Assembly: GCA_946965045.2 (NCBI GenBank)
Contig: OX337239.1
Span: 3,100,001-3,164,000 of the forward strand
DNA length: 64,000 nt
DNA from: Epithemia pelagica
Lineage: Eukaryota > Protista > Bacillariophyta
Direction of reading: 5' to 3'
Shown in pieces: positions 5,301 to 31,900 of the stretch. The translations under genes were made by a program, and so were the position numbers. Under the pieces are notes generated by a model. It saw nothing but the letters and a program-made list of their open reading frames with translations, was not told where the DNA came from and ran no database searches. Every line of letters begins with the position of its first letter. The first letter of the stretch is position 1.

Positions 5301-6627
5301 CACGGGACTTCCCTAGGAACAATTCTCGGGCACCATCAGATACCATTGTTTGGGGCATCCCTACATTGTGAATCAAAGACATCAATCCTTCAGGATGTTG
5401 CTTTTTCGACTTCCAGGGATAAACGTGGTCGAATCCTTTGCCGTCGGTAAAGATCGAGGCGCCCGTGTCCCCGTTCAGTGATACTTCCTTGGCAAACATC
5501 TCGTCCGAGAACCAACGGCCTTTCACATTAGGGAATTTGAGCCACGGTGCCTTCTTGCGGACCTTACGCTCAGATGGGATTAATACGTTTCGTACTCCAG
5601 CCTGCGTCGTCACTTTAAGCGTATTCTTCGCTTTGGGTAAACCAATGCCCCAACGTTGTGACAGTACGGCTGCATCAAGCACTCCCTTTCCAGCAGGATC
5701 GGCTGGGGAAGACTCGTTAGCAGTCTTGATCATGTACAGCCGACGTTCATGTTTGTCCTCCGGGACTACATCAGGCTCCTCTTTCTCTGGATGAACAGTG
5801 ACCGTCGCTATTAAGCGTTCGTACAGGTCGTCGCCTTGTGCGTCGGCGTCCAGATTGGGTGATGGATTAGCAAAAGCATGCTGGTACGTTCGCACTGCTT
5901 TGATGAGTCGTGGAATGGAGGATGCGGCAATCGAATTCGGATCGCCATTGCGAACGACAGTAGCGGCAGCTACACCCAGTTTCTCCTCCGCGTCCGCAAA
6001 GGCGGTAGAACGAGGTTGCCATGGGCTATCGGCAGTTAGCACAACTTGTGGCAAGTGTTCCAGCTCGTCAGAAGTGGGTTTGCGAGTGGCGAAACCACTT
6101 ATCACACCAGCCATGGTGAGCGGGATAGTGAGATCGGCATCCGGTACGTGGATACTATGCGTGCTGTGTGGGTCAAACTGTTTAGGTACGTCGTTGACAA
6201 CGATGCCATGGGCACGCATCTGGTTCGGACAGAGTAACGAACTGCCCATACGGTCCCCTAAAAACAATGCTTGGTGGATAACAAGCAAGTAAGACTGGTT
6301 TTCGCTGTCAGTCCAGACAGTGGCAACAGTCGCAATAGGGACATTGGTCAGCGGGTTATATTCCTCCGCGAACGGATGCACACTGATATAGCGGTGGGCT
6401 TCGGAGAGCATTACGAAGTCTCTTCCCACGGCACAGGTGTCCGCATGTGAGTCCAACTCACAGGTGAGCTCAATGGTCGCAACACCATATTCGTCGGTGT
6501 TCATAGCACATAGACGATGTGCGAAACGTTTAGAATAACTATAATGGGTGCCTACATGTGCATTCGATTGAACAATAAGATTCGTTTTATCAATGTTTAC
6601 TGCTTCGGCAGCGGATACACAGGGCAC
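2398..6627 (-). CDS. pol: Copia Pol polyprotein (aspartic protease, integrase, chromo-like segment, reverse transcriptase, RNase H)
   Basis: 1409-codon ORF with motifs ELDSHADTC (PR); FSDEMF / MVSDGA / AAEASI (IN DDE); DVQNAYL and YIDDLL (RT); FVDADHAG / SEFVAM / CDNESV / ADILTK (RH). The ORF-finder start is GTG two codons after the gag stop; the first ATG is about 41 codons downstream. Confidence 0.96.
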   Translation of the reverse strand: MPCVSAAEAVNIDKTNLIVQSNAHVGTHYSYSKRFAHRLCAMNTDEYGVATIELTCELDSHADTCAVGRDFVMLSEAHRYISVHPFAEEYNPLTNVPIATVATVWTDSENQSYLLVIHQALFLGDRMGSSLLCPNQMRAHGIVVNDVPKQFDPHSTHSIHVPDADLTIPLTMAGVISGFATRKPTSDELEHLPQVVLTADSPWQPRSTAFADAEEKLGVAAATVVRNGDPNSIAASSIPRLIKAVRTYQHAFANPSPNLDADAQGDDLYERLIATVTVHPEKEEPDVVPEDKHERRLYMIKTANESSPADPAGKGVLDAAVLSQRWGIGLPKAKNTLKVTTQAGVRNVLIPSERKVRKKAPWLKFPNVKGRWFSDEMFAKEVSLNGDTGASIFTDGKGFDHVYPWKSKKQHPEGLMSLIHNVGMPQTMVSDGARELFLGKSREICNEYRIKMEKTVPYSPWQNAAEASIRELKKGVVKIMRTTGAPRRLWSYALKWCSHVRQLTASDIPELDGRTPFEHVIGSTPDISPLAMFQFYQPVYYRMPMAQFPFEKRLIGRWLGLANDCTDDMAYEILTQEGNHVTRKDVWAIPEDDLKNPTIHQQLLDYDAAIQTQMKEPPSDGTTGSDSPPDLFDEGELLEPLFPEAEALESDAYTPEELDEYLTAEVMLPRGGESARAKIIGRTKDAHGRPIGERDTNPILDTRYYDVQFPDGSVESYATNMIAENLYSQVDPEGNAFNTLKAIVGHRSDETAVKRTDASFLDGTSHHTTKGWELQCELSDQSTVWLPLKDVKNGNMIEAAEYAVSTGIAKEPAFAWWVPRALRKRDRIIKKVKSRYWKRTHKYGIELPHSVEEALAIDRRTGTDFWRKAIEKEMKNVGIAFEFPADGEVPSGYKHIPCHMVFDIKSDLRRKARLVAGGHKTDPPKESTYSSVVSRDSVRIAFTIAALNGLDVLVGDVQNAYLNAPTKEKTYTTAGLEFGPDKVGQPALIVRALYGLKSSAARWRDHIAATLRDMGFKMCQADPDVWLRANTRPSDGFQYYEYVLVYIDDLLIVSHDPKTVMQDLQRRYTIKPDSIKPPDEYLGSEIRRYTIPDTQDPSNRDRWAMSADKYCKRALAEVETELEKSGEKLKSKVTTPIADGYRPELDATPELDARRANYYQGLIGILRWIVELGRIDITTAVSHMSRFMANPREGHLEQTLHIFAYLKKYDKSAIVFDDTTPDFDESRFTRPDWSEYYPDAAEPIPPNAPAPRGNAVTTTCFVDADHAGCRVTRRSQTGVLLFLQRAPIMWYSKRQNTVETSTFGSEFVAMKTAIEMIEAFRYKLRMMGIPLDGETNVFCDNESVFKNSTQPESVLKKKHNAVAYHRTREAQAAGLVRIAWEEGETNLADILTKLLPGPRLRFLAQRIMW

Positions 6628-6633
6628 ACTCCA

Positions 6634-8709
6634 TCAGGAGGAATTAGACTTGTCGGCAGACTTGTCAGAGACATTGGGGTCACGGACATCGAATTCAAGA
6701 TCGGCGGAATAACGACCGCATACATTACGCCTTCGCTCTGCGGCAGCCAATTGTCCATTGGCAAGCATAGTGTATTTCAAAGCTTCGTCGAACACTTCCG
6801 TGTGCTCGGCTAAGCGTCTGCACACATGGTACATTTGGCGCTCTTCTCGTTCATAGCCTGACATTTTAGACCAGCGCCAAGACCAAATTGGACTATTGTG
6901 TACAATAGTGTCGATCTCTTCGCGGAAGCTTCCTTTCAGCATACTTTGGTCATGCTTGGTAAGTGAGCGGACGTTACGAGGCCCTTCAGCAAACTTACCT
7001 TTGACCGGTAGCGGCAGCTTTACAAAGATGTCGCCGTGTTCCGGGACTGGTGGGATGGTCATATGACTCATATCAGGACGTCCGTCCTCTTCCCATTGCC
7101 ACATCGGTGGATAGGTCTCGTATTCCCCCATGGGGCGAGTACGTACGGATTTGACGGACGCAGATCCGGGTTCGTTCGGTTGTGCTTTAGCCTTATGCGC
7201 GAAACGTCCAAAGCTGTTGCCAGCTGAGGACTTTGTCGGCTGCGAATCATCTTCGGATGATTTTGCAGGTGAGGCGGAAGCGCGGAACTTAGAGTGCTTG
7301 TCTGGCGACGGTACGTTGTCAACAGAGGAGTCAAGCAAGTTCTCGTCCACTTCCATAATGACCGATACGTTGGTCTTAGCCTCAGGCTTAGCGTCGTCAT
7401 CAATGTCTACTGAGATTGCGTCCTCAGCAGTACTCCCATGCGACGTTTTCGATCTCTTCGACGATGCGTTGGAAGAGTCGTCTGTGGTGACGGATCCAAG
7501 CTTCCGCTTCTCTTTGCGCTCTTTGCGAAGAGCCTGGACTTGTTTGCGTTCGTCCTCCGTCAGGTCTGCCCATTCGTCGGCATCGTAGTGACCAGCATGA
7601 ACGCGGTCCTTCTTTTTCTTGCTCTTTTTCTGATTGCGCCCTTTGCCCTTTCCTTTGCTTGGGGTGGTACTAGCAGCGGCGATCTTGCGAGAGTCGTCCT
7701 GCGTTTCGGTTTTGGCGGCACTGTGCACAGTCAAGAAGTATTGCTGGCACGCTTCGAAGTTCTCCAACTTCTCCTGGTCACCGTTGACGACGGTCTTTGC
7801 TTGGACGAGCGTCGGATCGGTGATCCCATTCATGAAATCGGTCACTTTTTTCGTTTCCGCCACCGTTTCGCCAAGCTCTTCCAGGGTGTTGTGCGCATGT
7901 TGGTGACGGTGAATGTAGTCATGGAAGCGGTACTTCCCTCGTCCTGTAAACTTAGCATTTGCGATCTGCGCATAAGCTTGTTTCTTGCGCAGGATGCTCG
8001 CAGCCTGTCCAGTGGCTTGCCGCTTGACGGTTAGGTAGGCCTCACGGCCGTCCTTTGATTTTGCATGCGTTTTAGCAAACGTCCATGCCGGACCATCGTA
8101 GATAAGAGGGTAGTACAGCTCATACACTCTGCGTCGGTCGGCTTTGTACTGGTCCCCCTCATGACGAGTGGTCGCGACTAGGTCGTCGTCAATGCAGTCG
8201 TAATCGGCGGTTAGTGCGTCGTCCGGTACGTCGGACTCCTCACGCAATACGTAGGTGAGCGGCACTCCCGTCGTCGGATTACGGTGCTGACCCAAGTACG
8301 TGCGCCACATTCCGTTGTGACGTTCCCAATCGGCAAGGTTCGTTAGCCTTTTGGGTGGTACTGGGTCATCCTGACCATCAGTGGTGGTGGCATTCGCGAG
8401 TTCCGTTACGCGTCTCATCCACTTGGTGATTACGTCACCAGTATAAGCACCAGCATCAAGGTCCTGACCACGGACAGAACGGTATTCCAACCACATTCGG
8501 AAGCCAAGGAACTTCAGGTTGAATTGGTAGGGTAGGGTGACACCGTCGGGTAGGTTCTTGGCTAGTGTCTTCAGCATGGGCTTTACTTCGTTGATAGGAA
8601 ACTCCAGGAACTGATCCGTTGTCGTGAAGCCCTGTTGCGTTAGGTACCCAACGGTAGCATTGTCATAGCCACAGCGGCCCAGTGCAGTACGGAAGGCATT
8701 TGCGGCCAT
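6634..8709 (-). CDS. gag: CoDi-type Gag with a C-terminal extension
   Basis: 691-aa ORF upstream of pol inside the LTRs. It has CoDi-like gag segments (GVPLTYVLRE, YIHRHQHAHNTL, KVTDFMNGITDP, a basic tract, AGNSFGR) and no CCHC knuckle. Confidence 0.9.
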   Translation of the reverse strand: MAANAFRTALGRCGYDNATVGYLTQQGFTTTDQFLEFPINEVKPMLKTLAKNLPDGVTLPYQFNLKFLGFRMWLEYRSVRGQDLDAGAYTGDVITKWMRRVTELANATTTDGQDDPVPPKRLTNLADWERHNGMWRTYLGQHRNPTTGVPLTYVLREESDVPDDALTADYDCIDDDLVATTRHEGDQYKADRRRVYELYYPLIYDGPAWTFAKTHAKSKDGREAYLTVKRQATGQAASILRKKQAYAQIANAKFTGRGKYRFHDYIHRHQHAHNTLEELGETVAETKKVTDFMNGITDPTLVQAKTVVNGDQEKLENFEACQQYFLTVHSAAKTETQDDSRKIAAASTTPSKGKGKGRNQKKSKKKKDRVHAGHYDADEWADLTEDERKQVQALRKERKEKRKLGSVTTDDSSNASSKRSKTSHGSTAEDAISVDIDDDAKPEAKTNVSVIMEVDENLLDSSVDNVPSPDKHSKFRASASPAKSSEDDSQPTKSSAGNSFGRFAHKAKAQPNEPGSASVKSVRTRPMGEYETYPPMWQWEEDGRPDMSHMTIPPVPEHGDIFVKLPLPVKGKFAEGPRNVRSLTKHDQSMLKGSFREEIDTIVHNSPIWSWRWSKMSGYEREERQMYHVCRRLAEHTEVFDEALKYTMLANGQLAAAERRRNVCGRYSADLEFDVRDPNVSDKSADKSNSS

Positions 8710-9203: not shown

Positions 9204-9443
9204 TGAATAAAAACTGACGGCCAGACGCAATATACGGCTTGCAACAATCAAACTATCAGAAATTATGATGACTAAACTAGGGGTGCCCTTTGGGGGCAAA
9301 TCGCTCACGTAGGGGCCAAATAGCGACCACGGTACCCACTAGCGAACACATAGCTAGGGGCCGGGCGATGCCAGGCGGTGCGTAGCGAGGCATGGCGAGG
9401 CCCTTCGTAGGTTACAAAGGGGGCGCCCGTGATTATTTATTCA
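9204..9443 (-). repeat. 5' LTR of CoDi element 1 (240 bp)
   Basis: Direct repeat of 2036-2275. Confidence 0.97.
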
Positions 9444-9728
9444 TGTTGTTATCGTGGTGGAGGAAATGAGATATGCCGGCCGACTGGAAACAGGTTATTT
9501 CTGGCAAATAGGTATGGGGGTGGCTCAGAGAAATTACACCCTCTAAGCCACCCCCGCTGGGGGGTATTCCACGCGTACGAGAGAAGCTATTACGCTCCAG
9601 CGAAAGTGATTTTTTTATTTAGGAAAAACAGTGTATGCTCACAACAGAACCCTGGATCTTCACCGCTGGGGGTGAGTCCGAACCCATCATCAATCACAGA
9701 GCATCCGCTGCAGTCATTGTTTGGAACC

Positions 9729-10916
9729 ATGACCACGACACTGAAAGAACAAGCATGGCAGTCGGACCTTGTCCTACCGGACGACACAGCAGAATGGGAT
9801 GAAAACGATTGGCCTGCTTTTCTGGGAGGAGCGCGAGAGTATCATGCTTCGGTCGTACTTGACCATCCCGAGACGGAAAACGATAGCAACAACAGGGGGC
9901 AGACGGTCGTCGTGTTGGGAGGATATCAAACAGGCCAAGGCGAGCTCAATTCCATTCTGTTATTGAATCTGGCAGACCAAAACAAGCAGTGGCGAGAAGG
10001 GCCACCCATGAACAAGAGACGTGCTGGACATGCCACTGTTGTGTGCAACGGTCGCGTCTACGTCATGGGCGGATTCAATCGAGTAACTTTGGATTGTATT
10101 GAACGAATCGATGCCAATGATTTGCTACAATCATCCTTAACAACAACCACCACGCATGAGAGTCATTGGACGACATTGACATGTCGATTATCGACGAGAA
10201 GAAATGGATGTTGTGCTGTTGCGGTGCATGATCGATACATTGTTGTAATGGGTGGCTGTTACAACCATCGCGATTTGTCGTCGGTGGATATTATTGATAC
10301 CAACAATCACATTGTCACTGCTGGACCAAGCATGACTGTTCCTCGATCATACTGTGCCAGTGCGGTGATTGGACACCGCATCTTTGTCGTTGGAGGTTGT
10401 TATGGGCATGCCTTTCTTGACTCGGTGGAGTATTTGGACTATGCAACACCCTGTGACAAGGATGCGACAAAAAAGGAGATAGGCTCGGCGTCCATTTCTT
10501 TCTCAGCCACCTGGACCACTCATTTGGAGTTGAGGCTTTCCAATGGACGAAGGTCTTGTGCAATGGTTGCCGTCGGATCCTGTCTGACTGTGGCGGGAGG
10601 ATGGGACAATTCAACTGTGGAAGTTTTGGATACGCACCGCATCCGCGTTTGGAATCTCGCTGGAGTTCAAGAACAACGTTGGGGCTGCAGTATGGTGACT
10701 GTTGCCAATCATGTTGCCGTGATTGGTGGATGGGACAATCCTACCTGTGCGACATTTCCACTACTGGATAAGCATACTTGGTGTTTTCGTTGTCTCTGTG
10801 AGCAGCCTCGGAGGGAATGGTATTATTGTCCAGAAAGATCGGGTAACGAAGATGTTAGTGAAATAGCCTGCACCATCTCGACATCCGCTCTTAAACGATT
10901 GAGGACCAATACATGA
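9729..10916 (+). CDS. Kelch-repeat protein, copy K1 (six blades)
   Basis: Starts MTTTLKEQAW at ATG 9729; the longer ORF-finder start runs through transposon/LTR DNA. Six GG-containing kelch motifs (VVVLGG, VYVMGG, IVVMGG, IFVVGG, LTVAGG, VAVIGG). Confidence 0.9.
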   Translation: MTTTLKEQAWQSDLVLPDDTAEWDENDWPAFLGGAREYHASVVLDHPETENDSNNRGQTVVVLGGYQTGQGELNSILLLNLADQNKQWREGPPMNKRRAGHATVVCNGRVYVMGGFNRVTLDCIERIDANDLLQSSLTTTTTHESHWTTLTCRLSTRRNGCCAVAVHDRYIVVMGGCYNHRDLSSVDIIDTNNHIVTAGPSMTVPRSYCASAVIGHRIFVVGGCYGHAFLDSVEYLDYATPCDKDATKKEIGSASISFSATWTTHLELRLSNGRRSCAMVAVGSCLTVAGGWDNSTVEVLDTHRIRVWNLAGVQEQRWGCSMVTVANHVAVIGGWDNPTCATFPLLDKHTWCFRCLCEQPRREWYYCPERSGNEDVSEIACTISTSALKRLRTNT

Positions 10917-12634: not shown

Positions 12635-13205
12635 AAAGCGGTCCAAAGAAGACGAATGCAGGCATCTGCTGCTAATCCAACACGGGAAGCGAGTCTAAAT
12701 GGGATGAACGGCATGTTCCTTCTGGTCCATCATGTCGTCGGATTCTTGTTTTTGTGTAGTTGTACTTATGGCCTTGCTGCCTCCACTATATACCCGATGC
12801 ATTCGAATCACTGGATCAAGAGAAGACCACTCTCTCTGTTGTTGTTTGTTGTCGTTGTTGTGAGCAGTCTGTAGGACCAAGGGAAGAATGGTGTTCCATA
12901 AATGGCGTTGGACGAGAGATGACTCAGAACTAGGGATATCTACCCAGTGGATGTTGGATTGTCGATCTGTGGACCTCTTCATCACAGATTGGGATGTCGA
13001 TCTCTCTCCCTCGTCTCGTCGTATCTTACACAGCAAAAGATACTTTTCTTGGGGCTTGTCATGAAATATATGTGCGACTGATTGTCCTTCATCATCGTAC
13101 GCAGGACAGGCACAACTTTCCTGGTCTCTCCTCTCCACTGTCGCTGCGATTCTCAATTGCAAAGCTGTCATTGCTCGTCGACGTGGTTGTCAAGCGCCGT
13201 TGACC
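12635..13205 (+). repeat. Segmental duplicate of the K10 upstream region (about 56917-57537)
   Basis: Colinear shared text from aaagcg.tccaaagaagacgaatgcagg to aagcgccgttgaccATG. Confidence 0.85.
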
Positions 13206-14342
13206 ATGACAACGACACTGCAAAAGCAAGCATGGCAGTCGGGCCTTGTCCTGTTAGACGAGTCACCTGAATGGAATTTCGAGCACTGGCCTCCTCTTGT
13301 GGGTGGATGGCGTGGAGGTCATACCTCGGTCGTACTGAATCATACCGATAACAACCAAGAACAAACCGTCGTCGTGTTGGGTGGACATCGAACAGGTCAA
13401 GGCGAGCTAGATTCCATTCTTGTATTAAACTTGGCAGAATCAAACAAGCAGTGGCGCGAAGGGCCACGCATGAACCAGAAACGTGATGGACATGCCGCTG
13501 TTGTGTGCAATGGAGGCATTTACGTGATGGGAGGAGACAATGGAGCACCTTTGGATTGTATCGAACAAATTGATGCCAATTATTTGCTGCATTCACCTTT
13601 AACAACAAGCAACAAACATGAGAGGCATTGGACAACATTGACATGTCGGTTATCAACGCCACGATGGGGATGTGGTGCTGTCGCGGTTCACAACCGATAC
13701 ATCGTTGTATTGGGTGGACGCAGCAATCGTTATTTGCCGTCGGTGGATATTATTGATACAAACAACCACCTAGTCACTGCGGGACCATCCATGACTGTTC
13801 CACGAGCATGGTGTGCCAGTGCGGTCATTGGACACCGCATCTTTGTCGTTGGAGGTTGGAACGAGCATGGTCGTGTTGACAATGTGGAGTATTTGTACTA
13901 TGCAACACCCTGTGACAGTGATGTGACAAAAAAGGAGATAGGCTCGACATTCATCTCTTTCTCATCCACCTGGACCACTCATTCGGAGTTGAGGCTCTCC
14001 AATGCACGAAGTTCTTGTGCAGTGGTTGCCGTGGGATCTTGTTTGGTTGTGACGGGAGGATGGGGCAATTCAACCGTGGAAGTCTTGGATATTCACCGCA
14101 ACCGCGTATGGAATCTCCCACCATTTGGAAATCACCGTGTGGGCTGCAATATGGTGACTGTTACAAATCACGTGGCCGTGATTGGTGGATGGGAGAATCC
14201 CTCCTGTACAACATTACCACTCCTGGATAGGAATTCGTGGTGTTTTCGTCGACTTTGTGAGCAGCAGCCCAATGGATGGGAGCATTCTCTTGAAGGCACG
14301 GGTATCCGAGACGCTGATATCTCACGCTTCTTCAACTCGTAA
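13206..14342 (+). CDS. Kelch-repeat protein, copy K2
   Basis: Open paralog of K1 with the same six-blade pattern; ATG at 13206. Confidence 0.9.
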   Translation: MTTTLQKQAWQSGLVLLDESPEWNFEHWPPLVGGWRGGHTSVVLNHTDNNQEQTVVVLGGHRTGQGELDSILVLNLAESNKQWREGPRMNQKRDGHAAVVCNGGIYVMGGDNGAPLDCIEQIDANYLLHSPLTTSNKHERHWTTLTCRLSTPRWGCGAVAVHNRYIVVLGGRSNRYLPSVDIIDTNNHLVTAGPSMTVPRAWCASAVIGHRIFVVGGWNEHGRVDNVEYLYYATPCDSDVTKKEIGSTFISFSSTWTTHSELRLSNARSSCAVVAVGSCLVVTGGWGNSTVEVLDIHRNRVWNLPPFGNHRVGCNMVTVTNHVAVIGGWENPSCTTLPLLDRNSWCFRRLCEQQPNGWEHSLEGTGIRDADISRFFNS

Positions 14343-16438: not shown

Positions 16439-19400
16439 TCAGTCGCTATTGGAAGGTTTGCGTCGTTTCCTTTGCCTTGGTGAAGGATCCTGGTCCGAGG
16501 TAATCTCATCTTCGTTGGACCGGCGCTCTCGTCTATTTGACAGGGCGAGAGCGTGTTTCTGATGAATTTTGAAACAAGTGACTGCCTTTTCTGCAACCAC
16601 CTTGACGTGACCAACCAACTGTTTGTATCTGGAATCTGTTCCGTTCAAGTCCATAGTAGCAACAAAAACAAGACATTCGCTTAGGTCGAGTTCAAGAAGT
16701 CACACATGAATTATTCCTGCCGAAATTTGCGCTGCAACACTTACCATACACATTTTCGCCAGTGATTTCACAAATTTGCATGGTTGGTAGTTGGGTTGGG
16801 AACAGACCACTGAAATCATCAAGCCACTTGTTGGCGCTTCTACTAATAGGTCTATCAATTGGGTTCTTTGGCGAAACTAGAAGTGACGCACTCGCTGTAG
16901 CGGGAGAAGACGGGAGGACCCAATGACATCCTGGAAAGGCATCCACAATCACTCGACTGACACCCGTCCAGGGGCAAACAGTCTCGTTCCGCGCCAAAGC
17001 ACACAATAGCTCAGCAATACACCATTTCTTTTGAACATAGTGTGTCGATGTCACACAAACCACAACTCGCGCTGTAAGAGCGTTCGTCAACATGGTAACA
17101 AGCGGATAAGATTGGTGTCCGGCATGCATTGTTTTTTCTGCCACAAAGATATTGAGTATGTTGCCACCACCAGCCGCGATTTGCAACTGATCCTCCAAAC
17201 TGGTCACATAGTCAAACTCGAGCTCTTTTCGAACTTCCCCGGCAAACGAAATGAAAACGTGGTATTTTGGTTTTTGGTTTGCAGAAGGAACCTTGTCGAG
17301 CATCATCTTTGCCAAATCGATTCCACATGACATAATATCTTGAACTGTCTTCAATCTTTGAGGATTCAACTGTTCCAGGTCCTCTTTTCCTGATGTCATC
17401 TGAAGTCGGAGCGTATTAATCCTTCCACGAGCGTCAGATACTTTTAGGAGGCGCTTGCCAAGCTTGACAAAGCTCATTGAAGACATTGAATCTAATTCGA
17501 CGATCAGCGTTGCACCATATTCAATGGCATGCCTGAGAATTGTATCCAAACACTGCAGTTTGTTACCGATTTGCGCAACAATTTCTCCCTGTCCGCTGCT
17601 GTTCATGGTAGCCGATGGCAATTGACAGTTGCTCTTGATGACTGTACTAGCTTCTTGATTGTTTGAGACCTCCGAGCGACCGGATGCCAACAACAACGGG
17701 CGGTTGGGCGACCTGTATTGAATTGATTCCCATGTTGGACTAGTATGTGTGATCCCTGCGACCGCCTGTGCTTCTAGGTGCGGTTGATTGCTATGGCTTA
17801 CATCATAGGTAAGCCAATTGACGTTCTTTTTTAATGCTTTCGAAACCTGTTTCATATCATGATCCGACATGTTCGTATTTCCAACATCAAACAAACGCCA
17901 CCCGGAATTTTGCTGCAATGCCGTGGACAGGGAAATCATGCCATCGTCTCCAACATCAGTATGTGCCAATCGCAAGTGTCGCCATGTCTTTGATGACGTC
18001 AGAGCTTGTAACAACGCACTGAGACCAAGATCGGACATGTTCGTGAACCCGAGATCAAGAGTATGCCACGATCGACGCGCGATACCCCAAACCAAGTCGA
18101 TCACTCCTTCACCAGTGACCATTGGCATGTTGGAAACGGAAAAACTTGACCACGTGGTGTTACGAGACAACGCTATTCCTAAATCATGTGCTCCCTGTTG
18201 GCTGATCTTGATATGAGACAGATTCATACAACGCCAATCACAATTGCTCTTCATCCCATTTACCAGCGCCTTTACACCAGGATCATCAAGATCCGAATTG
18301 GCCAGGTCCAAGATTTGCCAGTTTGTGTTCCTTTGCAACATCTCCGCAATGGCATTGGCTCCGTCCTCCCCAATGTCCAGATGACTCAACGACAAACGAA
18401 ACCAATGGACATTGCCTTTTGGTCTAGATCCAAGAGCGGCTGATGCTATAGAAGCATTGGTGCTGTCAATGTTCTCTGCCGTTGCACCATCACCTTGAAT
18501 TGACTGGATCAGTCCAAGGGCTGCTAGAAACGTCAACCGTGGCGTGTGGTGAAGTGAAATGGTTCGAGGAATGGTAAACGGTCGACCGACACGGAGTGCC
18601 TCGTTCGATGGCAGCATGCACAAATCCATGGATTGCCAGCATTGTCCCAAATACTCTGCCATTTCCAGGGCATCGGTTGCTTTTTCATGATTTGTGAGGA
18701 AGAAATTTGAAATTGTTTCTTCCGTCACTCCAATTTCGTCTGGATGGTTCTCTAGCAGAAAGGGCAGGTGCTGAATGGGGTTGTTGTTCGAGTATGGAAA
18801 CCAAAGCACCAATGAGTTCCAGTTTTTCTCCAACCGTTGGAGAATGGCTGGACCAACCTTGAGCCATGACCAAACTTCTTGACCTCGCACATGTAAAACA
18901 AACCGTTCCCAGCTTGGTGACGTTTTTAGTAGATTGGCCAACATTTCCACCCCTTGGTCGGGAGTGCCATAAGGGAGACTCAAAGCAAAATATTTCCAAG
19001 AGGTTTGTCGACGGAGAGCCTCGGCTAGTATGTCGACATGTGTTGCCTTTTCTAAATCCATATCAAACACTCGCCAGACTGAGTTGCCATGCAGTGTTCT
19101 GGTAACGGATCCCAGTCCTCCATCAAAATCAGAGGGAAATGTATAGCTAAACGTTTCCCAGCATTGATTGCAACGCAAGGCATGTGACAATGCTTCCATT
19201 TCACAGTCGCGGATCCTCGGAACCCGTGTACCAAATCGTACCTCAAGTTGGAAAGATTTCCATGTTTTGTTGACACTCAAGGCTTCAACCAAGGCTTTGA
19301 CTCCATTCACAGAAGAAAACTGTATGTCCCAGAGCTCGAAGTTGGTCCATTGGGTATTTTGTTGCAGTGCTTTTGCCAGTGCTTCAACTCCTTCATCTTC

Positions 19401-19973
19401 AAGGTTCGTACTAACAAGCTCCAACTCCTGCCAAACGTGATTGTTGCCCAAAGCACCAACCAGTGCTTTCCATCCACGCGATCCAAAATTGCAGTGCTGA
19501 ATAGACAACTTCTCCCAGGACGGATTTTGATCCATAGCATTCGCGAACCGAACCGCCATTTCGTCGTCCAGGGCTTTTACGAAATACAATCTCAGCTCAG
19601 GATCTCGGTTTGTTGTCGTTTTAACAAAAACACGGGCGAGCGCTTCAATGCCCACGTCACCGATATCCGAATGGCGGAGCGACAGCTTGGACCAATCCAC
19701 ATTAGCACGTCCTCTGCCCCTGACGTCTCTATCAAAATCGAGAATGGCTTGTGCAGTGCGGTCAGTGGCTTTGGTGTTGGTCAATCTTGGCAAAAACGGT
19801 TCTTTCCCAAAGTGCTCCACCATTCGTTGTTTCATCTTGGGGCTGATCCGGGTACGTCGCAATTGATATGGATCGCATTCGTTCATTTCAGGGTTGTTTA
19901 CGTCCATTGTCGTTTCTGGAAGAGGCATGGTGCGGTCCATTGGCTCGTTGAGGTCGAAAGTCGTTGTTGTCAT
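16439..19973 (-). CDS. LRR-TIR protein (RNI-like LRR blocks, helical linker, C-terminal TIR domain, basic tail); two exons
   Basis: 1093-codon ORF 19973-16692. Repeats such as LSHLDIGEDGANAIAEML-NTNWQILDLANSDLDDPGVKAL. TIR motifs YHVFISFAG, IFVAE, VVVCVTSTHYVQKKWCIAEL. Predicted intron 16744-16636 (GTAAGT...CTAA...CAG, phase 1 at both ends) joins ENVY to DSRYKQ...RQRKRRKPSNSD, stop at 16439. Confidence 0.85.
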
Positions 19974-21795: not shown

Positions 21796-22549
21796 TAGCA
21801 GAACTCTCATTGAGAATTCAGAAGGGTAATAGGTAGTTGGGTAAAAGGCTCGCTGAGCCGACAATCGAATCACCAACCGATACAACAATCCTCCACGGGT
21901 CAGAGAAGAGTTGCAAGTCGAAGTCCGCCGTGGGTGGGGGCAGTCGGTCCACTGATAAGAGGTAAGTCTTAAGATGAGTGTTAAAATGGTGATATTAATG
22001 ATTGTGAGACGATTACTAACTAAGGTGGTTGATGGTGCCGAAGTCCTGGCTCTTGTATACGGCCATGGATCTGGTGTGATAGGTCCTCACTGGTTGGAGT
22101 AGACCGGCATTGGTGTATATTGAATGTATAGGGTGATGGATAACATGTATGGGATGCAACAGCTCTTGCTTTGTCGTGGTATAAGTCTTGTGCTGGGCGC
22201 GTTGCTGTTTGCATTCTTGGATTAGTGGGAACAGAGATATGGTCTCGCGTGATCGTGATTCGTGCTTTGATTACATAGACCGTTAGGTCGAATCGTGGAT
22301 GCGCGTACTCGGATAGTCAAGGCGCGCATTCGATGGTTTTGGGCGCGCACGTGTTGGGCCATAGTTAATATCCGAGCGGTCGCCAATAACACGTGCAATG
22401 CGAGCATGCCATGGCCAAATTTATAGTTTCGCGAGCATGCCGACATTCCTTTCTCACTATTAGGAAAATGTCATCGGATGCCATAAAATACTAGCATCAT
22501 TCGATGAGTTGTAGGTTTCGCCACCTAGCTTTCGGTGAGAATCCTAACA
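21796..22549 (-). repeat. 3' LTR of element 2
   Basis: Direct repeat of 26356-27109. Confidence 0.92.
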
Positions 22550-25500
22550 CTCCCCACAATTTGTCGAATGAGGATTGTTATTTTCCTTGTCATGCTTCTG
22601 AACGTTTCCTCCCCAGAAGAATATGATCTTGAACATGGTCCATACTTTCGAGAATTTCCAATGCTTGTTGAGAATGTCTCCTGGATGTTCTCATAGTCAT
22701 CATTCTTGAGTTGGTAGGTCTTGTCGATGCCCTTTGAGCTATGCTCCCCAGGTGCCTTCTTCATCCAAACATTGGGATCTGCTTTAGTTGGTGACAAATC
22801 CATATCAATTGGGGTGTCAAAGAAACAGTCACGCCGACATGCTCCTGAAGATTTTAATCCCTTGGAGGCCTTGTGCATAATCAAGATGTGACCTGATTCC
22901 TTGAGTTCTTGTCTTGCAACTATCAAGATCTTCTCTCCAGATAAAGCTTCCAGGTCGTGTGCATTTCCAACTTTTGCTCCCCATATATCCACATCATTGA
23001 GAATCCCAAGACAGGTGGTTGTATGGAAGTTGTGAATGGAAGTAGCACACAGAATGATTGCCTCAGCCGGTTCTTTGGTAAAAGGTTCGTCTGTGATGAG
23101 AAGTGCTTTGCGACTATCATCATGATTTACAAGATGGACTCGAATCTTGTTCTTGTGATACTCTTCTGAAGATGCATTTATCATTTTCCCTCTGCTGAGC
23201 TGGGTTTGACGATAATCCTTGAATGTCTTGAGAGATTGAGTCCGAGAAACCTGAGAGGGCTCAACTTCAGTAGTGTCGTGCCACTTTTCTTTACCATGTT
23301 GCTTGTCTAACAAAACAACTACTTCTTCATATTTCTGTGGAACTTCTTGATAACCAAACTTGTACTTGATGGAATGACAGACATGCTTGATTCGTGACTG
23401 CTGTTTGGCAGCTTGAACAAGGTATTTACTGGTCTTGACAAAACGCTTGAGATGTTTCCATCCAAGTTCACTCAATAGATCATGTTTCTTGGTGTATGCA
23501 TCGTTTACCATTAGTGACGGAGGCTCATAGATCATCTCCCCAGTCTCCCAATCAACAAGTATATGACAGGGACTTCTTTTGTAGTCAAGATTGTTGCAAA
23601 TACTTGACGGTTCTTGATCTCCGACGACATCTCTGAATTGGAAAACGTTATCTTCAGTTGCCTTTGCTTGGTTATCCTGTTTGATGTATTCCATATGTTG
23701 ACGGTATGAAATTATCTTGTCAATGTCGGAAATGGATTTGTAGAAAGTGTACTTGATATAGTCTTCTTGCTTCAGAGCATCTTGTTCTAAATCAACGATG
23801 CATCTGATAAGACATGGTCGTCGTTGCTCCCCATTATATGGTTGTCGTTGCTCCCCATTTTCCTCAGGATCATAAACAAGGAAAGTTTGGCCAATAGTGT
23901 CATCATATTTGATCGTAGGGATTTGCGTGGATGGATCTTCACCTTTGCAACAAATGAAAACAATGTCAGCTTGTTTGCCGTTGGGTTTATTTGGAAGCGA
24001 CTCCTCCCCTGAAGAGGTATCCACACAAAGGTTGCTGCTGGGTGGCCTGGATGCATCATGAAGAATGGCAGAGTAACAAAGGGTTTGAGTGTCCAGAGAC
24101 AAAGTATCACCAATAGGAGGGGCAAAAACAAGCCACCAGTAGCCAAGTGTCGTGACAAAAGAGGGAGGGTAGGGACGGTGGGAGAGGGCATATGATTCGG
24201 TAGAGTAGGGGGCCTTGTCCCAGATAAGGAAGAAAAGTGGGTGGGTAATGCCGGGTGGGCGACCATTGAGGATCTCAAGAGGGATATGGCCCGAAACGGT
24301 CACGACGTATGTTGTCCTCTTAACGGTCTGATAACGGTTCTCAGCCATGTTCTGATCTTGGAGGTATGGTTTGGAACAGTACTCTCCAAGTATGGGTGTG
24401 AAGAAGGAAGGTGTATCAGGTCCATGATCATAAGGTAAATCCAAGAGAAGGTTGAGGTTACAGGCAACACGATTGGTAGACTTCCCAAAAGCATCATTCG
24501 GATTGCCATCATTTTCAACAGTCCTCGAAGAAGGTGCCGTATCTTGCATGGGATCAAGATGCCAATGATTAAAGCCAGTCACTTGATTGTTGCCGGAGAA
24601 AGTAGACATGCGAGAAAGCAGACGTCGAGATGTCTGAACTTTCTGTTTACAGTTGTTGTTCTCGAGACAATCATTGAGGGTGGATGTTGCCTTGGTATTG
24701 GACATCAAATGAGTAAGATCAGATAGATTATCTTGATGGTTTTGGGAATCATGTTGAATCATGTCGTCAATCCGTGTACTACCAGGGTCAGGATCAGGTT
24801 CCGGATCAATGTCAAGAGTATGTGTCTGTTCCTTCCATGCAGTTGTTGTTGATGCATTCTGGGTAGACTTCTTGTTGTACGCAATGATTACTTGACGACT
24901 CTTGTTAGTGAATTTCTTCCACAGATCTCTTGGAAGACTGATCTTTGGAAGCGAAGATGAATCCTTGGTCTTCATATTAGTTCTCTTAATCCTGTGGTGC
25001 ATTTCTTTGGGTGATCGATTATTGATATCAAAATCTTGGTCATGTCGAAAGCCACGTTGCTTGGTATGCTTACATCGGTTCGACTTTGGTGATCGAGTTG
25101 CTCGGTCATGATCATATGCGGCATCAAGGAGAAGACGGAAATATGATTGATAACAAAGTGTCTTTGCACCAGGCAAGATGTTGACTTGTCGTAAAACAGG
25201 TACCTTTTCAACGGCTTTCATCAGGAAGGTCATCCTAGTGGAGTGGCCAGGAATGTGATCAAACATTGATCCCAGATTGTCGAGAAGATGGAATTGGTGT
25301 TGAAAGTGGAGAAGAAACTGATAGGTTGTGCCGTGCCATGAATCATCGAGACGAAGATTGGAGATGTAGTTGTTAAGACGTAGCACCTCTCTTTTTGCTA
25401 AACGAAATGACGAAATGCAACCTTGGTTCAGACGGAGCTTGGTGAAGTCTGCATTGATTCTCCAATGATCATAATTGGCCTTGGTGAGGTTCAACCAGGT

Positions 25501-25851
25501 AGAGCGAGGTAAATCAGACTGCTGCAGGGTTGAGGTTTGTTCTCGTGACCAATGTGCTAGGATCTTCAGTTGATGCCTTGTAAATGTCTTCAGATCCATC
25601 GTCTTGTTCCCATACTTGTATTGTCCAAGGTCCTTGATATTCTTTTCTGGATTGACTGCAAGATAGTCGATGACATTCAGAATGTGTTCGAAACCACTAT
25701 GTTTTATCCATTGATGAAGGGCTTGAGCTCGTTCTTCATCACATTCAAATAGATGCTGGGTGATATGATTGAACACTTGTGTATCTGATATGTCAGGCGG
25801 TACTGAGTCGTCAGAAGGAAGAGAAGGTGTCTTGGGGTATGTTGGATCCAT
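22525..25851 (-). CDS. Decayed but open gag-pol-derived ORF (1108 aa)
   Basis: Gag-like (LDDSWHGTTYQFLLHF), partial IN (QNMAENRYQTVKR), chromo-like (VDWETGEMIYEP) and partial RT (KGLKSSGA, KADPNVWMK) segments. No protease motif, no YxDD, no RNase H. The stop lies inside the 3' LTR. Confidence 0.75.
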   Translation of the reverse strand: MDPTYPKTPSLPSDDSVPPDISDTQVFNHITQHLFECDEERAQALHQWIKHSGFEHILNVIDYLAVNPEKNIKDLGQYKYGNKTMDLKTFTRHQLKILAHWSREQTSTLQQSDLPRSTWLNLTKANYDHWRINADFTKLRLNQGCISSFRLAKREVLRLNNYISNLRLDDSWHGTTYQFLLHFQHQFHLLDNLGSMFDHIPGHSTRMTFLMKAVEKVPVLRQVNILPGAKTLCYQSYFRLLLDAAYDHDRATRSPKSNRCKHTKQRGFRHDQDFDINNRSPKEMHHRIKRTNMKTKDSSSLPKISLPRDLWKKFTNKSRQVIIAYNKKSTQNASTTTAWKEQTHTLDIDPEPDPDPGSTRIDDMIQHDSQNHQDNLSDLTHLMSNTKATSTLNDCLENNNCKQKVQTSRRLLSRMSTFSGNNQVTGFNHWHLDPMQDTAPSSRTVENDGNPNDAFGKSTNRVACNLNLLLDLPYDHGPDTPSFFTPILGEYCSKPYLQDQNMAENRYQTVKRTTYVVTVSGHIPLEILNGRPPGITHPLFFLIWDKAPYSTESYALSHRPYPPSFVTTLGYWWLVFAPPIGDTLSLDTQTLCYSAILHDASRPPSSNLCVDTSSGEESLPNKPNGKQADIVFICCKGEDPSTQIPTIKYDDTIGQTFLVYDPEENGEQRQPYNGEQRRPCLIRCIVDLEQDALKQEDYIKYTFYKSISDIDKIISYRQHMEYIKQDNQAKATEDNVFQFRDVVGDQEPSSICNNLDYKRSPCHILVDWETGEMIYEPPSLMVNDAYTKKHDLLSELGWKHLKRFVKTSKYLVQAAKQQSRIKHVCHSIKYKFGYQEVPQKYEEVVVLLDKQHGKEKWHDTTEVEPSQVSRTQSLKTFKDYRQTQLSRGKMINASSEEYHKNKIRVHLVNHDDSRKALLITDEPFTKEPAEAIILCATSIHNFHTTTCLGILNDVDIWGAKVGNAHDLEALSGEKILIVARQELKESGHILIMHKASKGLKSSGACRRDCFFDTPIDMDLSPTKADPNVWMKKAPGEHSSKGIDKTYQLKNDDYENIQETFSTSIGNSRKYGPCSRSYSSGEETFRSMTRKITILIRQIVGSVRILTES

Positions 25852-28096: not shown

Positions 28097-29282
28097 ATGG
28101 CCACGACGATGAAAGAAAAAGCATGGCAGTCGGGCCTTGTCCTGTTAGACGAGACACCTGAATGGAATTTCGAGGACTGGCCTCCTCTTGCGGGTGGATG
28201 GCGTTGCTATCATGCTTCGGTCGTTCTCGATCATCCCGATAACAAGACGGAACAAACCGTCGTCGTGTTGGGCGGATATCGAACAGGTTATGGCGAGGTC
28301 AATTCCATTCTTGTATTAAATTTGGCAGACCCAGACAAGCAGTGGCGAGGGGCCACCAATGAACAAGAGTCGTCGAGGACATGCCGCTGTTTTGTGCAAT
28401 GGCGGCGTCTACGTGATGGGAGGTCGCAATACAGCAACTTTGGATTGTATCGAACGCATTGATGCGAACGATATACTACAACCATTTTTAACAGCAAGCA
28501 CCACACATACGAGTAATTGGACGACATTGACATGTCGATTATCAACGCGACGGTTTGGATGTTGTGCTGTCGCGGTTCACAACCGATACATCGTTGTAAT
28601 GGGCGGCTACAACGATCATGATTTGTCGTCAGTGGATATTATAGATACAAACAACCACACTGTCACTGCGGGACCAAGCATGAATATTCCTCGATCATAT
28701 TGTGCTAGTGTGGTCATTGGTAACCGCATCTTCTCCGTTGGAGGCTACACAGGACGCTCGGTGGAGTATTTGGAATTTTCAAAGCCTGGTGACAATGAAG
28801 AGACAAAAAAGGAAACTGGCTCGACGTTCATTTCTTTCTCGTCGACCTGGACCGCTCATTCTAATATGGTGCTTTCCAATGCACGAAGTTCTTGTGCAGT
28901 GGTTACCGTGGGATCCTGTTTGGTAGTGGCCGGAGGACTAGGCGATTCAACCGTGGACGTCTTGGATACGCACCGCAACCGTGTGTGGAATCTCCCACCA
29001 TTCGGAAATCGCCGCGATCACTTCAGTATGGCGATTGTTGCCAATCATGTTGCCGTGATAAGTGGTTTTGGCAGTTCTGCCTGTGCGACATTACCACTAC
29101 TGGACAAGCATACGTGGTGTTTTCGACGACTCTTTGAGCATCAGATCGACAGATGTTGTCTATTTCGGGAAGGAAGGAATATCCAACTTGCTGATAATTC
29201 ACCCTTCTCCGCCTCGACATCAGCTCATAAACGAGCAAGGCCCGATACACGCCGTGGTGATGAAGGAAAGGATGAAACTTGA
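28097..29282 (+). pseudogene. Kelch-repeat copy K3, frameshifted
   Basis: Starts MATTMKEKAW at 28097. A 2-bp loss near 28349 (gcgag-gggccacc vs gcgagAAgggccacc in paralogs) shifts into the 28359-29282 frame. It could be a sequencing error. Confidence 0.85.
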
Positions 29283-31900
29283 AATTTGCAACGTATTGCA
29301 TGTATGTCCTAACAATAGCGGAACTGTAGCATTATCATTTTACTCTCAAACAGTTGGTGTACTGTATTCTTCATGGCATTGCGACCTCTAGAGATATCAC
29401 ATACACCTTTGTACTAGTAGAAAACGAAGGTTACACCATCCGGCATGACACCGCAAACAGGAGTGGAGCCAGGCCTCGGGTAGATGTCCATGGTACCATG
29501 CCTCTCTGAAGTTAACTAGGTCGACTTATCATGCTGTGGAAAATTATGGTTGCGTGCCTGCAACACTTGGCGCAGCGACTCGTTTGGACGGTCGACCATG
29601 CGTTCAATTGTGGAGTCCGGGCTTTCTATGGCTAACGCCTACGTGAGAGGACAGTACCCCGTCTCTCGATGCTTGTGGTTTCGGGTGACAGAACCCTTTG
29701 GAATTTTTGCCACCGAAGTGTTCGATATTTCCTCCACTACAGCAACTAGTCTTTGTGAAGTCTTTATGATTCAGCAATTTGCTTGCGTCGATCCAGCAAT
29801 CAGTCTCTCTGTAGTGGCTCGTTGACAGCCCATGGGTATCGGTCCATGGGGATCAACAAGAACAATCGTAGTGTGCAAAGTTATGTCTTGCCCCTCAATG
29901 CCAGTTCCGTCGAAACCTTGTTGCACGATTACAACACTGTCGAACAGCAGCGTTGGACATTGACCAGTACAAGCTTTGTGCCTCGTACAACACCACAAAA
30001 CCACGACCACGACTGCCGCCGATCATGTCTTGGCTGTAGTCTACTAGAACTGCTTGTTCTTCTTCTTCTTTGTTGGATTCTGGTTGGTGTTGCTGCCTTG
30101 TCGTTCCACACCGACAACCAGCTTGAATCTTCGTATGTATTAGACTTGAAAGGGCGATGCGACTCTTTCCCATGATCAATTCTTCACTGGTGTGTGGAGC
30201 CGGCAAACACGATAGGCATCCAAACGTTCAGCGTCGTCTTTGAAGACGATCAATGGTTGAAAGAGATACCGACAAAGAACCAAGGTCACGCCCGTCCAGC
30301 GAGCAAGGGTAGCTTGAGAGGTCACTATTGAATTACCGCTCCGACCTCGTTGAAAGAAAATTCATACCTTTACCCGCTTTTGTACACAACGTCTTGTTGT
30401 GGTGTTCAACCTCCAACCACAGGTTCGAGTCGAATCTTCATCCGTGATGCGCATATGCTGGAACCACACAAGAAGAAGAAGGAACGTGTGGGTCGCGTTC
30501 GAATGGACAGCAGTATGGGCGACAACCAGGAAGGTACTGCCTGCCACTCAACCTGTTTCAAGGAGAAGTTGTGACAATGTATACATTGTCGAACGTGTGT
30601 ATTACATGCTTGTTGTGTTTGGAGTTCCGGACCAAGACTTTCTGCGCAAAGGAGTATATTCGACGGGCAAGATGGGGCATCCCTCTAGTATTTTGGTGGC
30701 TGTCCCTGGACGGCCTCGAACCAACAATCGTTCCACATGTGGCTCAAGAATAGCCCCAGCGTCGTCGTTCGTCGTCCAATCCCATCCACACCAGGAAACC
30801 ATTGCTGTGCGTCCTCCACTCGCACTACCAACGGTTGAAACTCTTCTCAAGACGCATTTGCTTGCGGTCCTCCCAGAGATGTAGTCTCCCACGGTTGCAG
30901 CCAATCGGGATGGATGCGGTGCGCAAGAGTCGTTGACACTCTCGTGTCCCACCAATAAGAGCAGTAGTCTCCCAAGGCTGTCCTTTCACAGACCAAGCTC
31001 GTTCGGACAGTGGTTGGCGCATACCAATCACAAATCCTCGGGCACCGAAAATATCCCAAAGACATTAGCTTTCCGCACGTATAGGAGGAGCCTGTTTCAA
31101 GAAATGATACCAAATGGTCTTGTTGAAGTCATGAATTGTATCACTCTCCGTTTGTCGAATTCCAATTCCTGATTGTGTGGATTGGAGGATCCCATGATTT
31201 TGGGAGGAGGCGTAATGATGGATTCCACCATTAGGGATGACAGATACTCGTCACGTGACACTGTGTCATGAGACACCAAGCTTCCATGGCTTGTATGGGT
31301 AAGCCGACTACCAAAGGAGGACGAGTAGTGGTAGTTGTTGATAAGGAGGATGTTTTTGTTGTTGCCGAAAAGGAAATAGAGGTGGTTGCCCTTTTGTCGT
31401 GCGTCAATCAGGATCTCAGCCGTTTTGCTGCTCATAGACGACCGGAAACAAGACGAGCAAACGGAGAAGGATAACCACGCGAACGTTTCATGACACGGAA
31501 TGGATTCGAATCCCTTGCAGAGACCACGTTGTGTTGGTAGTGTTGTTGCTCCTGCCGTCCTTCATTCTCTCTTTCGAAGAGAACAGCACCACTCCCATAG
31601 CTCGAATTCGGTACACTTGGTCAACGAAGAAAATATGATGATCATGCGCCGTCTTGTCCATCTTTCTTGTTTTGCTGGATCTATGAATTCGAATCTGCTG
31701 TTTTGTTCTGTCATGCATTATATGTGCGACCCACTCTTGCCCAAGATTGCGTACCTACGACAGACACTCTGGCTCAAATGCTTCCACGCGTAGTTCAGAA
31801 AATTTTGAGTTGATGTTCCATCAGTCCGCATCCATCACAGCATCAAAACTGATGCCTTTCGATCCTCCTCATAAATTCGCTGCTGTCATTGTGTGGAACC

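Follow-up and report, generated by a model that had tools for sequence, protein, structure and literature searches.

Gene structure and features

The window, a stretch of 64,000 nucleotides from the diatom Epithemia pelagica, holds on its minus strand an intact two-exon gene that belongs to a small diatom gene family and encodes LRRs followed by a TIR domain. Its features are listed here by position in the window, within which no rRNA or tRNA match was found.

16692..19973, minus strand: single uninterrupted open frame of 1093 codons (ORF call)
16745..19973, minus strand: exon 1, part of open frame 16692-19973: codons 1-1076 and one base of codon 1077
19719..19973, minus strand: N-terminal ~85 aa, poorly conserved, predicted disordered, not hydrophobic
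18774..19718, minus strand: LRR block 1, aa 86-400, ~11 RI-type repeats of 28-29 aa
18429..18773, minus strand: spacer between the LRR blocks, aa 401-515 (115 aa)
17664..18428, minus strand: LRR block 2, aa 516-770, nine regular 28-aa RI-type repeats
17289..17663, minus strand: disordered linker (aa 771-795) and three long helices (aa 796-893)
16745..17288, minus strand: TIR domain, strands A to E, aa about 896-1076
17010..17012, minus strand: Glu988 codon (gag) of WxxxE, in KKWCIAELL
16636..16744, minus strand: predicted intron, phase 1, 109 nt, GTAAGT...ACAG
16439..16635, minus strand: predicted exon 2, last two bases of split codon 1077, 64 full codons and the stop
16457..16477, minus strand: basic motif RQRKRRK, fitting the monopartite NLS pattern K-K/R-x-K/R

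Predicted intron. The 1093-aa product of the open frame is identical to called protein P0001 in ENA assembly ERZ21939226. Conservation across the family ends at ...ENVYG with K following, which is the GGTAAG donor, and read-through beyond this donor yields 17 non-conserved residues. The predicted intron runs from GT at 16744-16743 to AG at 16637-16636, and the splice would join ...ENVY to DSRYKQLVGHVKVV...PRQRKRRKPSNSD and a stop at 16441-16439, for a predicted product of ~1141 aa under the two-exon model. Introns of the paralogs at this site are 94-109 nt long and not multiples of 3, and the intron position is shared by two annotated gene models of Epithemia clementina. The public runs with this DNA are genomic contigs, which carry no information on splicing or expression, and none has a joint across 16636-16744. 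The intron, which an earlier note on this DNA had proposed, is thus a prediction with good comparative support.

Exon 2 and basic tail. Exon 2 opens with DSRYKQLVGHVKVVAEKA..., which is probably the last TIR helix; an acidic stretch and then the basic tail follow. The earlier note had likened RQRKRRK in the spliced tail to a monopartite NLS, and the motif does fit that pattern. A protein that acts in the nucleus, with this run as a working NLS and the TIR as a nuclear enzyme, is nevertheless quite unlikely. Exon 2 stays open across paralogs, with every indel in frame, and RQRKRRK-type motifs with small changes occur in four of the six paralog tails of this genome. Against nuclear action, the other two paralogs and the named Epithemia homologs were found to lack such a tail, dN/dS of exon 2 is 0.4-0.97, and little weight can be put on a few basic residues within a disordered tail. 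Since the basic tail is limited to paralogs of this genome, nuclear targeting stays a guess.

A soluble protein with no NTPase domain detected

The earlier note described a soluble LRR-TIR protein with neither NTPase nor membrane segment, and the domain searches bear this out. NACHT and NB-ARC had zero matches to the protein in Pfam, NCBIfam and PADLOC, no Walker A pattern was found in it, and no TM helix was seen, the Kyte-Doolittle maximum over 19 residues being 1.52, inside the TIR core. We assign no signal peptide, as the N-terminus is hydrophilic. Neither an ARM nor a SAM domain was matched by Pfam. The PADLOC search left its ThsB model unmatched and gave weak matches to PDC-S66 (1.7e-05) and to RT-TIR_XII and RTas1465 (E 0.006-0.008).

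Should the gene model be incomplete, a STAND NTPase or membrane anchor might be encoded by further exons, which would make this an ordinary NLR or a TLR-like receptor. The poorly conserved N-terminal 85 aa and the longer N-terminus of the paralog P0002 would fit such a model, which we hold to be extremely improbable: the 2.5 kb upstream contain no minus-strand ORF of at least 100 aa, and annotated Epithemia models of 997-1195 aa carry LRR_6 and TIR and no other domain. The next ORF, 22525-25851, was considered as the missing NTPase exon and rejected, having no match in Pfam or the PDB.

LRR blocks and spacer

The domain order is confirmed as first read from the sequence: LRR block, spacer, LRR block, helices and TIR, with the basic tail on predicted exon 2. 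LRR_6 matches the protein at E=4e-16, and PDB matches of the LRR part are to ribonuclease inhibitor and to the LRR chains of NLRP5/14/3 (E 1e-15 to 1e-8). The register is W-anchored with a period of 28-29 aa, giving ~20 RI-type repeats in total (~11 + 9). This LRR class is typical for intracellular proteins.

Block 1 is the fastest-evolving part of the protein, with dN/dS of 0.75-1.24 between full-length paralog pairs; in block 2, about four repeats are deleted in paralogs P0004, P0005, P0006 and P0008. No N-terminal segment of the family is better conserved than the spacer, which has many near-invariant residues, also in the named Epithemia homologs. The spacer is modelled at low confidence and may consist of degenerate LRRs or form an island domain. 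Since the AlphaFold model of the whole protein has a pLDDT of 55, it was used for secondary structure only and not for domain packing. Atlas feature searches with the TIR module and with the spacer returned scores of 0.85-0.89, which we treat as leads only.

Helical segment and TIR domain

Helical segment. The three helices, modelled by AlphaFold2 with pLDDT mostly >90, are a constant companion of this TIR subfamily, including its LRR-less members of 230-330 aa. The combined helical and TIR module occurs alone, behind LRRs, or behind ankyrin repeats (P0033).

TIR sequence. As a single sequence the TIR is marginal in Pfam, where PF01582 (TIR) scores 22.2 bits against a cut-off of 21.3 and PF13676 (TIR_2) 22.1 bits, under its cut-off of 28. 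A family profile was needed because the single-sequence search of the PDB reached only E=0.028 (RPS4). The profile matched Roq1 (E=3.6e-10), then RPV1, PdTIR, RUN1, L6 and AbTIR, and later TLR1 and SARM1. The match to canonical TIRs spans strand A to helix C only, and the second half is family-specific.

TIR structure. The AlphaFold2 model of aa 770-1093 of the open frame (pLDDT 75, pTM 0.75) gives the TIR a flavodoxin-like five-stranded alpha/beta fold at aa 901-1078 that contains a variable disordered loop (aa 1018-1044). With this model as query, the best 50 VIA structure matches are all TIR domains; AbTir stands at Z 10.7 (rmsd 2.5 A, 123 aligned), and SPARTA, SARM1, RUN1 and RPP1 are also among the 50. 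Foldseek on the TIR model gave only E-values >0.04, poor because of the extra helices and loops. Together, family profile and model make a solid case that the C-terminal domain is a true TIR fold, as the earlier note had proposed from the letters of the sequence.

Catalytic residue or scaffold. The catalytic-type Glu placed by that note at 17010-17012 is encoded there (E988) and aligns with Roq1 E86. Across 33 aligned sequences, 22-99% identical to the window protein, the only invariant columns are W984, E988 and C991. From W984 and E988 we predict NADase activity; the same Glu is kept in TIRs long held to be pure adaptors, so E988 is no proof of catalysis. In the adaptor alternative the TIR would be a non-enzymatic scaffold that, like MyD88/MAL, recruits other TIR proteins of the same genome by homotypic contact, with ligand or partner binding left to the LRRs. 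The fold agrees with this as well as with an enzyme, since MAL, MyD88 and TLR TIRs match at Z 9-10, and the divergence of its C-terminal half also fits. That W984 and E988 are strictly invariant while almost all else varies, and that the TIRs closest in sequence are plant and bacterial enzymes, argue for an enzyme, and we consider the scaffold unlikely.

Family, selection and genomic setting

An exhaustive sequence search gave 29 hits. Outside this genome, members of the family turned up in Epithemia and among a few metagenome fragments, and nowhere else in the searches; a literature search found no paper describing it. Two hits, P0040 (an SRCR/Ig protein of a ray) and P0050 (a Listeria-Bacteroides repeat protein), were discarded because their repeats matched spuriously, and P0048, a doubtful member with Pfam LRR_1 only and no TIR, was not aligned.

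Purifying selection acts on the TIR, with dN/dS of 0.27-0.54 at dS up to 0.79. Paralogs are mosaics containing near-identical stretches; P0002 differs from the window gene by a dS of 0.01 over the helical and TIR part, with an identical intron. The family is turning over, as its many split or truncated paralogs in this genome show. The window gene itself sits in an array rich in Kelch genes and retroelements. Kelch neighbours were rejected as a conserved functional partner, as neither of the two Epithemia loci examined has a Kelch gene nearby.

This setting, together with the mosaic paralogs, the decayed copies and the purely genomic origin of the public runs containing this DNA (contigs from a single study), could also be read as an intact but idle gene: a recent duplicate carried along with the Kelch array, held open through gene conversion, not yet decayed and now functionless. 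Such a gene would hardly be expected to keep a fully open frame of 1093 codons, a TIR on which comparison with distant paralogs shows purifying selection (dN/dS 0.27 at dS 0.79), and an architecture and intron retained in Epithemia homologs, and we regard idleness as very unlikely.

Comparison with known systems

SARM1 and TIR-1. The closest working analogy is SARM1, with sensor repeats, an oligomeriser and a TIR, and the resemblance is one of layout only. Like SARM1 and C. elegans TIR-1, the diatom protein is soluble and has an N-terminal repeat solenoid, a helical middle and a C-terminal WxxxE TIR, with no NTPase; the TIR fold is also alike (VIA Z 9.6-10). SARM1 differs in having ARM repeats and tandem SAM domains where we find RI-type LRRs and detect no SAM, and its TIR matches weakly by sequence (E about 0.01 with the family profile).

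Plant and animal receptors. The nearest TIRs by sequence are those of plant TNL and TIR-only proteins (Roq1, RPS4, RUN1, L6), whose YDVFLSFRGE resembles YDVFISFAGE here. In the diatom protein, however, the order is reversed, with the LRRs ahead of the TIR; NB-ARC is missing, the LRRs are RI-type and not plant-specific, and the TIR sequence match stops at helix C. Animal NLRs and ribonuclease inhibitor share the 28-29-aa LRR_6 repeat class, but the diatom protein has no NACHT and places its effector domain C-terminal to the LRRs. Toll-like receptors likewise have LRRs N-terminal to the TIR, but with a signal peptide, a TM helix and LRRNT/LRRCT caps, all missing here, and with LRRs of another class. 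Of two descriptions in the earlier note, a TLR without an anchor fits poorly, given LRRs of the intracellular RI/NLR type and a TIR nearest to plant TNL and bacterial TIRs, while an NLR without its NTPase is the more apt label, taken as a description only.

Microbial systems. The diatom gene differs from Thoeris ThsB in being eukaryotic and carrying a predicted intron. Microalgal TIR proteins with the conserved Glu and a proposed antiviral role are reported from the haptophyte Gephyrocapsa huxleyi, in which TIR genes respond to virus infection; these proteins are reported to have no LRR or NBS domains (PMC12489294), and they are not among our 29 hits. For several unicellular eukaryotes, conserved-Glu TIRs have been reported to work as NADases in vitro (bioRxiv 10.64898/2026.04.20.719644).

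Proposed mechanism and significance

By analogy with SARM1, we lean, by a little more than an even chance, towards the diatom LRR-TIR protein being an NTPase-free innate-immune or stress switch. Both RI-type LRR blocks, together with the conserved spacer, would form a ligand-sensing or autoinhibitory solenoid, and the three-helix segment would hold or oligomerise the C-terminal TIR. Once brought together, the TIRs would cleave NAD+ via the WxxxE glutamate E988, with NAD+ depletion or an ADP-ribose-derived signal as the outcome. The cytosolic location, ligand sensing, oligomerisation, NADase chemistry and immune role in this scheme we only infer.

A broader reading, which we put forward tentatively as a possibility some way short of even, is that the family represents a diatom-lineage class of innate immune receptors that combines RI-type LRR sensing with a TIR NADase and has no STAND NTPase or membrane anchor. 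A private three-helix module would replace the oligomerisation engine, and the class would diversify as LRRs are gained and lost and as gene conversion acts within Kelch arrays.

NAD-derived immune signalling is established in bacteria, plants and animals. Diatoms are major primary producers, and to our knowledge almost nothing is known of how they recognise viruses, bacteria or parasites. In the papers searched, no TIR-based system was described in diatoms, and a 2025 paper states that before its haptophyte data no microalgal TIR antiviral system had been described (PMC12489294). The value of the present family is tempered by its small size and by the decay of many of its copies. As an intact full-length gene that joins a sensor-like part to an enzyme-like TIR, the window gene offers a concrete protein for testing NAD-derived immune signalling without an NTPase switch in diatoms. 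If the NTPase-free receptor class is real, it would be an independent solution, in a major phytoplankton group, to the problem that NLRs and TLRs solve.

Gene and domain order

At window positions 16692-19973 on the minus strand the LRR-TIR gene has a single open frame of 1093 codons, and the identical protein (P0001) is called in ENA assembly ERZ21939226; this copy of the family is full-length and intact. Pfam finds LRR_6 in the protein at E=4e-16, and its TIR is marginal there (PF01582, 22.2 bits with the cut-off at 21.3; PF13676, 22.1 bits with the cut-off at 28). The earlier note, made from the sequence alone, had described a soluble protein with no NB-ARC/NACHT domain, P-loop, transmembrane segment or signal peptide. 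This description held: Pfam, NCBIfam and PADLOC gave no NACHT or NB-ARC match, a pattern search found no Walker A motif, the N-terminus is hydrophilic, and hydrophobicity over 19 residues peaks within the TIR core at a Kyte-Doolittle value of 1.52.

TIR domain

Profile. By itself the protein sequence reaches RPS4 at E=0.028 only, so relatives were gathered for a profile, using a word search with aa 780-1093 and an exhaustive phmmer search with aa 885-1080 against 1.84 billion representatives, among which only 29 proteins matched at E<=0.001. Two phmmer matches (P0040 and P0050) were discarded as spurious repeat matches, and P0048 was kept out of the family set as doubtful. The only invariant columns in family alignment A3 (33 sequences) are W984, E988 and C991. 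The A3 profile matches plant TNL TIRs first (Roq1 at 3.6e-10, then RPV1, RUN1, L6 and RPS4), next bacterial TIRs (PdTIR, AbTIR, TcpB), then TLR1 and, more weakly, SARM1. The gag at 17012-17010 (minus strand), previously picked out as the Glu codon of WCxxEL, indeed encodes E988 in KKWCIAELL, which the profile aligns with Roq1 E86. The profile match ends at helix C, the rest of the domain being family-specific in sequence.

Fold. In an AlphaFold2 model of aa 770-1093 using A3 (pLDDT 75, pTM 0.75), aa 796-893 form three long helices, after which comes an alpha/beta domain of five strands. The model's Foldseek list is almost all TIR domains, with weak E-values. In VIA, 50 of 50 rows are TIRs, covering model residues 132-315; the best is AbTir (Z 10.7, with 123 residues aligned at an rmsd of 2.5 A), and SPARTA, SARM1, RUN1, RPP1, MAL and MyD88 score Z 9-10.4. 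An ESM-Atlas shape search gave TIR clusters only. Since profile, VIA and ESM-Atlas shape matches all point to TIRs, we regard the proposed TIR fold of the C-terminal domain as established, and place the protein in the TIR superfamily. Pairwise Nei-Gojobori dN/dS among paralogs is 0.27-0.54 here, and by these estimates the TIR evolves under purifying selection.

LRR blocks and spacer

The first LRR block (aa 86-400) has about 11 repeats and the second (aa 516-770) nine regular ones, in the same tryptophan-anchored register of 28-29 residues, with which the strand/helix alternation of a whole-protein model coincides (pLDDT 55, used for secondary structure only). In the PDB their sequence matches ribonuclease inhibitor (RI) and the NLRP5, NLRP14 and NLRP3 LRRs; judged by this, the repeats are RI-type and belong to the intracellular LRR class. 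Block 1 has pairwise Nei-Gojobori dN/dS of 0.75-1.24 among paralogs, which, at the level of pairwise estimates, hints at relaxed or diversifying change. The spacer between the blocks (18429-18773, minus strand, aa 401-515) is the best-conserved N-terminal segment (dN/dS 0.3-0.44), with many near-invariant residues common to the Epithemia clementina homologs; it is modelled poorly, and could consist of degenerate LRRs or form an island that binds a ligand. Four paralogs (P0004, P0005, P0006, P0008) lack about 100 residues, or some four LRRs, of block 2 (window aa ~655-755) and also 8 residues of a TIR loop (aa 1031-1038) in family alignment A1; this LRR loss is repeat-number variation inside the family.

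Family and paralog history

Beyond the window copy, ERZ21939226 holds P0002-P0009, P0025, P0027 and P0028, several of which are truncated or split ORFs; upstream of each of P0003 and P0007 lies a separate LRR ORF. E. clementina LRR-TIR proteins (997-1195 aa) have the same architecture and 41-47% identity in the C-terminal part. The more distant members come from metagenomes and comprise short helical+TIR proteins (230-330 aa) plus one ankyrin-TIR; they share 25-34% identity with the window protein in A3 and 30-50% over phmmer-matched stretches. Because the same helical+TIR part stands behind LRRs, behind ankyrin or alone, the unit conserved across these sequences is the three-helix segment plus TIR, with exchangeable N-terminal repeats.

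Compared with P0002 (locus L001), the window copy has, over 16636-17700, dS of 0.01 across the helical+TIR part and a 100% identical intron, and pairwise Nei-Gojobori dS of 0.13-0.5 elsewhere, including the LRRs. Immediately downstream, exon 2 is only 85% identical to that of P0002 and resembles the L004 copy. Such near-identity amid diverged flanks is indicative of gene conversion.

The searchable literature yielded no account of an LRR-TIR family in diatoms, an absence that does not prove novelty; TIR, LRR and Kelch go unmentioned in the Epithemia genome paper. TIR proteins of G. huxleyi are said to be without LRR or NBS domains (PMC12489294).

Intron, exon 2 and basic tail

Conservation over nine paralogs stops precisely at ...ENVYG/K, the read-through of GGTAAG. 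The predicted splicing from GT (16744) to AG (16636), applied at six paralog loci, gives introns of 109, 109, 94, 108, 109 and 103 nt, so the intron is not kept in frame. The spliced frame is open for 61-64 codons at four of the six loci, among which exon-2 indels are all 3 or 6 nt. Exon-2 dN/dS is 0.4 in comparisons involving the window copy and 0.9 in two without it (L001-L005, L004-L005). The E. clementina NCBI gene models P0024 and P0031, annotated by BRAKER2 on protein and RNA-seq evidence according to PMC12377750, contain one intron each (117 and 87 nt), in the corresponding position and with a GTAAGT donor. Their second exons start L-x-x-H-(I/R)-K-V-(V/I), compared with QLVGHVKVVA in the window, and P0024 has ALAFSNR for ALALSNR. 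These introns lend independent support to the predicted one, placed at 16636-16744 in the earlier note. The three runs found to contain this stretch of DNA consist of genomic contigs. As the TIR model from exon 1 ends past strand E and exon 2 opens with a helix-like stretch, exon 2 probably supplies helix E.

The basic run RQRKRRK (16457-16477, minus strand) is kept in slightly varying form by four of six paralogs and, as a pattern match, fits an NLS. The suggested NLS-like tail stands for these copies and does not extend to the E. clementina proteins, which lack the run in a tail comparison.

Many short metagenomic helical+TIR calls in A3 (P0032, P0033, P0041, P0046, P0049) end soon after ...G-K. 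Apparently they run on through the same GGTAAG donor, in which case the wider family may share the intron position.

Genomic surroundings

The gene lies inside an array of Kelch-propeller genes with retroelement ORFs.

Main ORFs around the LRR-TIR gene
2398-6627, minus: Copia-type reverse transcriptase ORF, 1409 aa (RVT_2, 5e-19)
6634-8709, minus: 691-aa ORF directly after it, no Pfam match
9429-10916, plus: stand-alone Kelch propeller ORF (Kelch_1)
13200-14342, plus: stand-alone Kelch propeller ORF (Kelch_1)
22525-25851, minus: large open frame, 1108 aa, the next large ORF upstream of the LRR-TIR gene
28359-29282, plus: stand-alone Kelch propeller ORF (Kelch_1)
31889-33040, plus: stand-alone Kelch propeller ORF (Kelch_1)
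33469-34491, plus: stand-alone Kelch propeller ORF (Kelch_1)
41289-42431, plus: stand-alone Kelch propeller ORF (Kelch_1)
48498-50588, plus: 696-aa ORF, DUF6729 sub-threshold (21.6 bits, cut-off 27)

The first two ORFs are probably one retroelement. The six Kelch ORFs encode 300-500 aa (Kelch_1 E 1e-23 to 1e-36). Kelch genes also adjoin other paralogs in the same assembly and are missing at two E. clementina loci examined, so the association looks like co-duplication inside this genome and not like a conserved functional partnership.

An NTPase exon hidden upstream would turn the gene into an NLR-like one. It is unlikely, since there is no minus-strand ORF of at least 100 aa for 2.5 kb upstream, and the 22525-25851 frame, rejected as a source of such an exon, matches nothing in Pfam (E<=5) or among PDB sequences. 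The sole lead for that frame is a weak Atlas feature similarity (0.84) to Copia-like 'Blackbeard' clusters.

Comparison with known systems

Combining a solenoid of repeats with a helical module and, at the C-terminus, a WxxxE TIR, and lacking NTPase and membrane span, the layout is closer to SARM1 (ARM-SAM-TIR) than to a TLR or NLR. The protein falls outside the NLRs, having no NTPase, outside the SARM1 family, having no ARM or SAM, and outside Thoeris, ThsB not being matched. The earlier likeness to a TLR without a membrane anchor fails, the LRR class being wrong in addition to the missing signal peptide and transmembrane segment.

A 2026 preprint (10.64898/2026.04.20.719644) reports NADase activity for conserved-Glu TIRs of amoebozoan, choanoflagellate, cryptophyte and oomycete origin, which raises the prior for catalysis here; it also reports that several animal TLR TIRs yield cADPR, so the Glu alone cannot tell an enzyme from a receptor TIR. 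The best-supported scheme has three parts: the LRRs would sense a ligand or keep the enzyme off, the helical module would position or oligomerise the TIRs, and the assembled TIRs would cleave NAD+.
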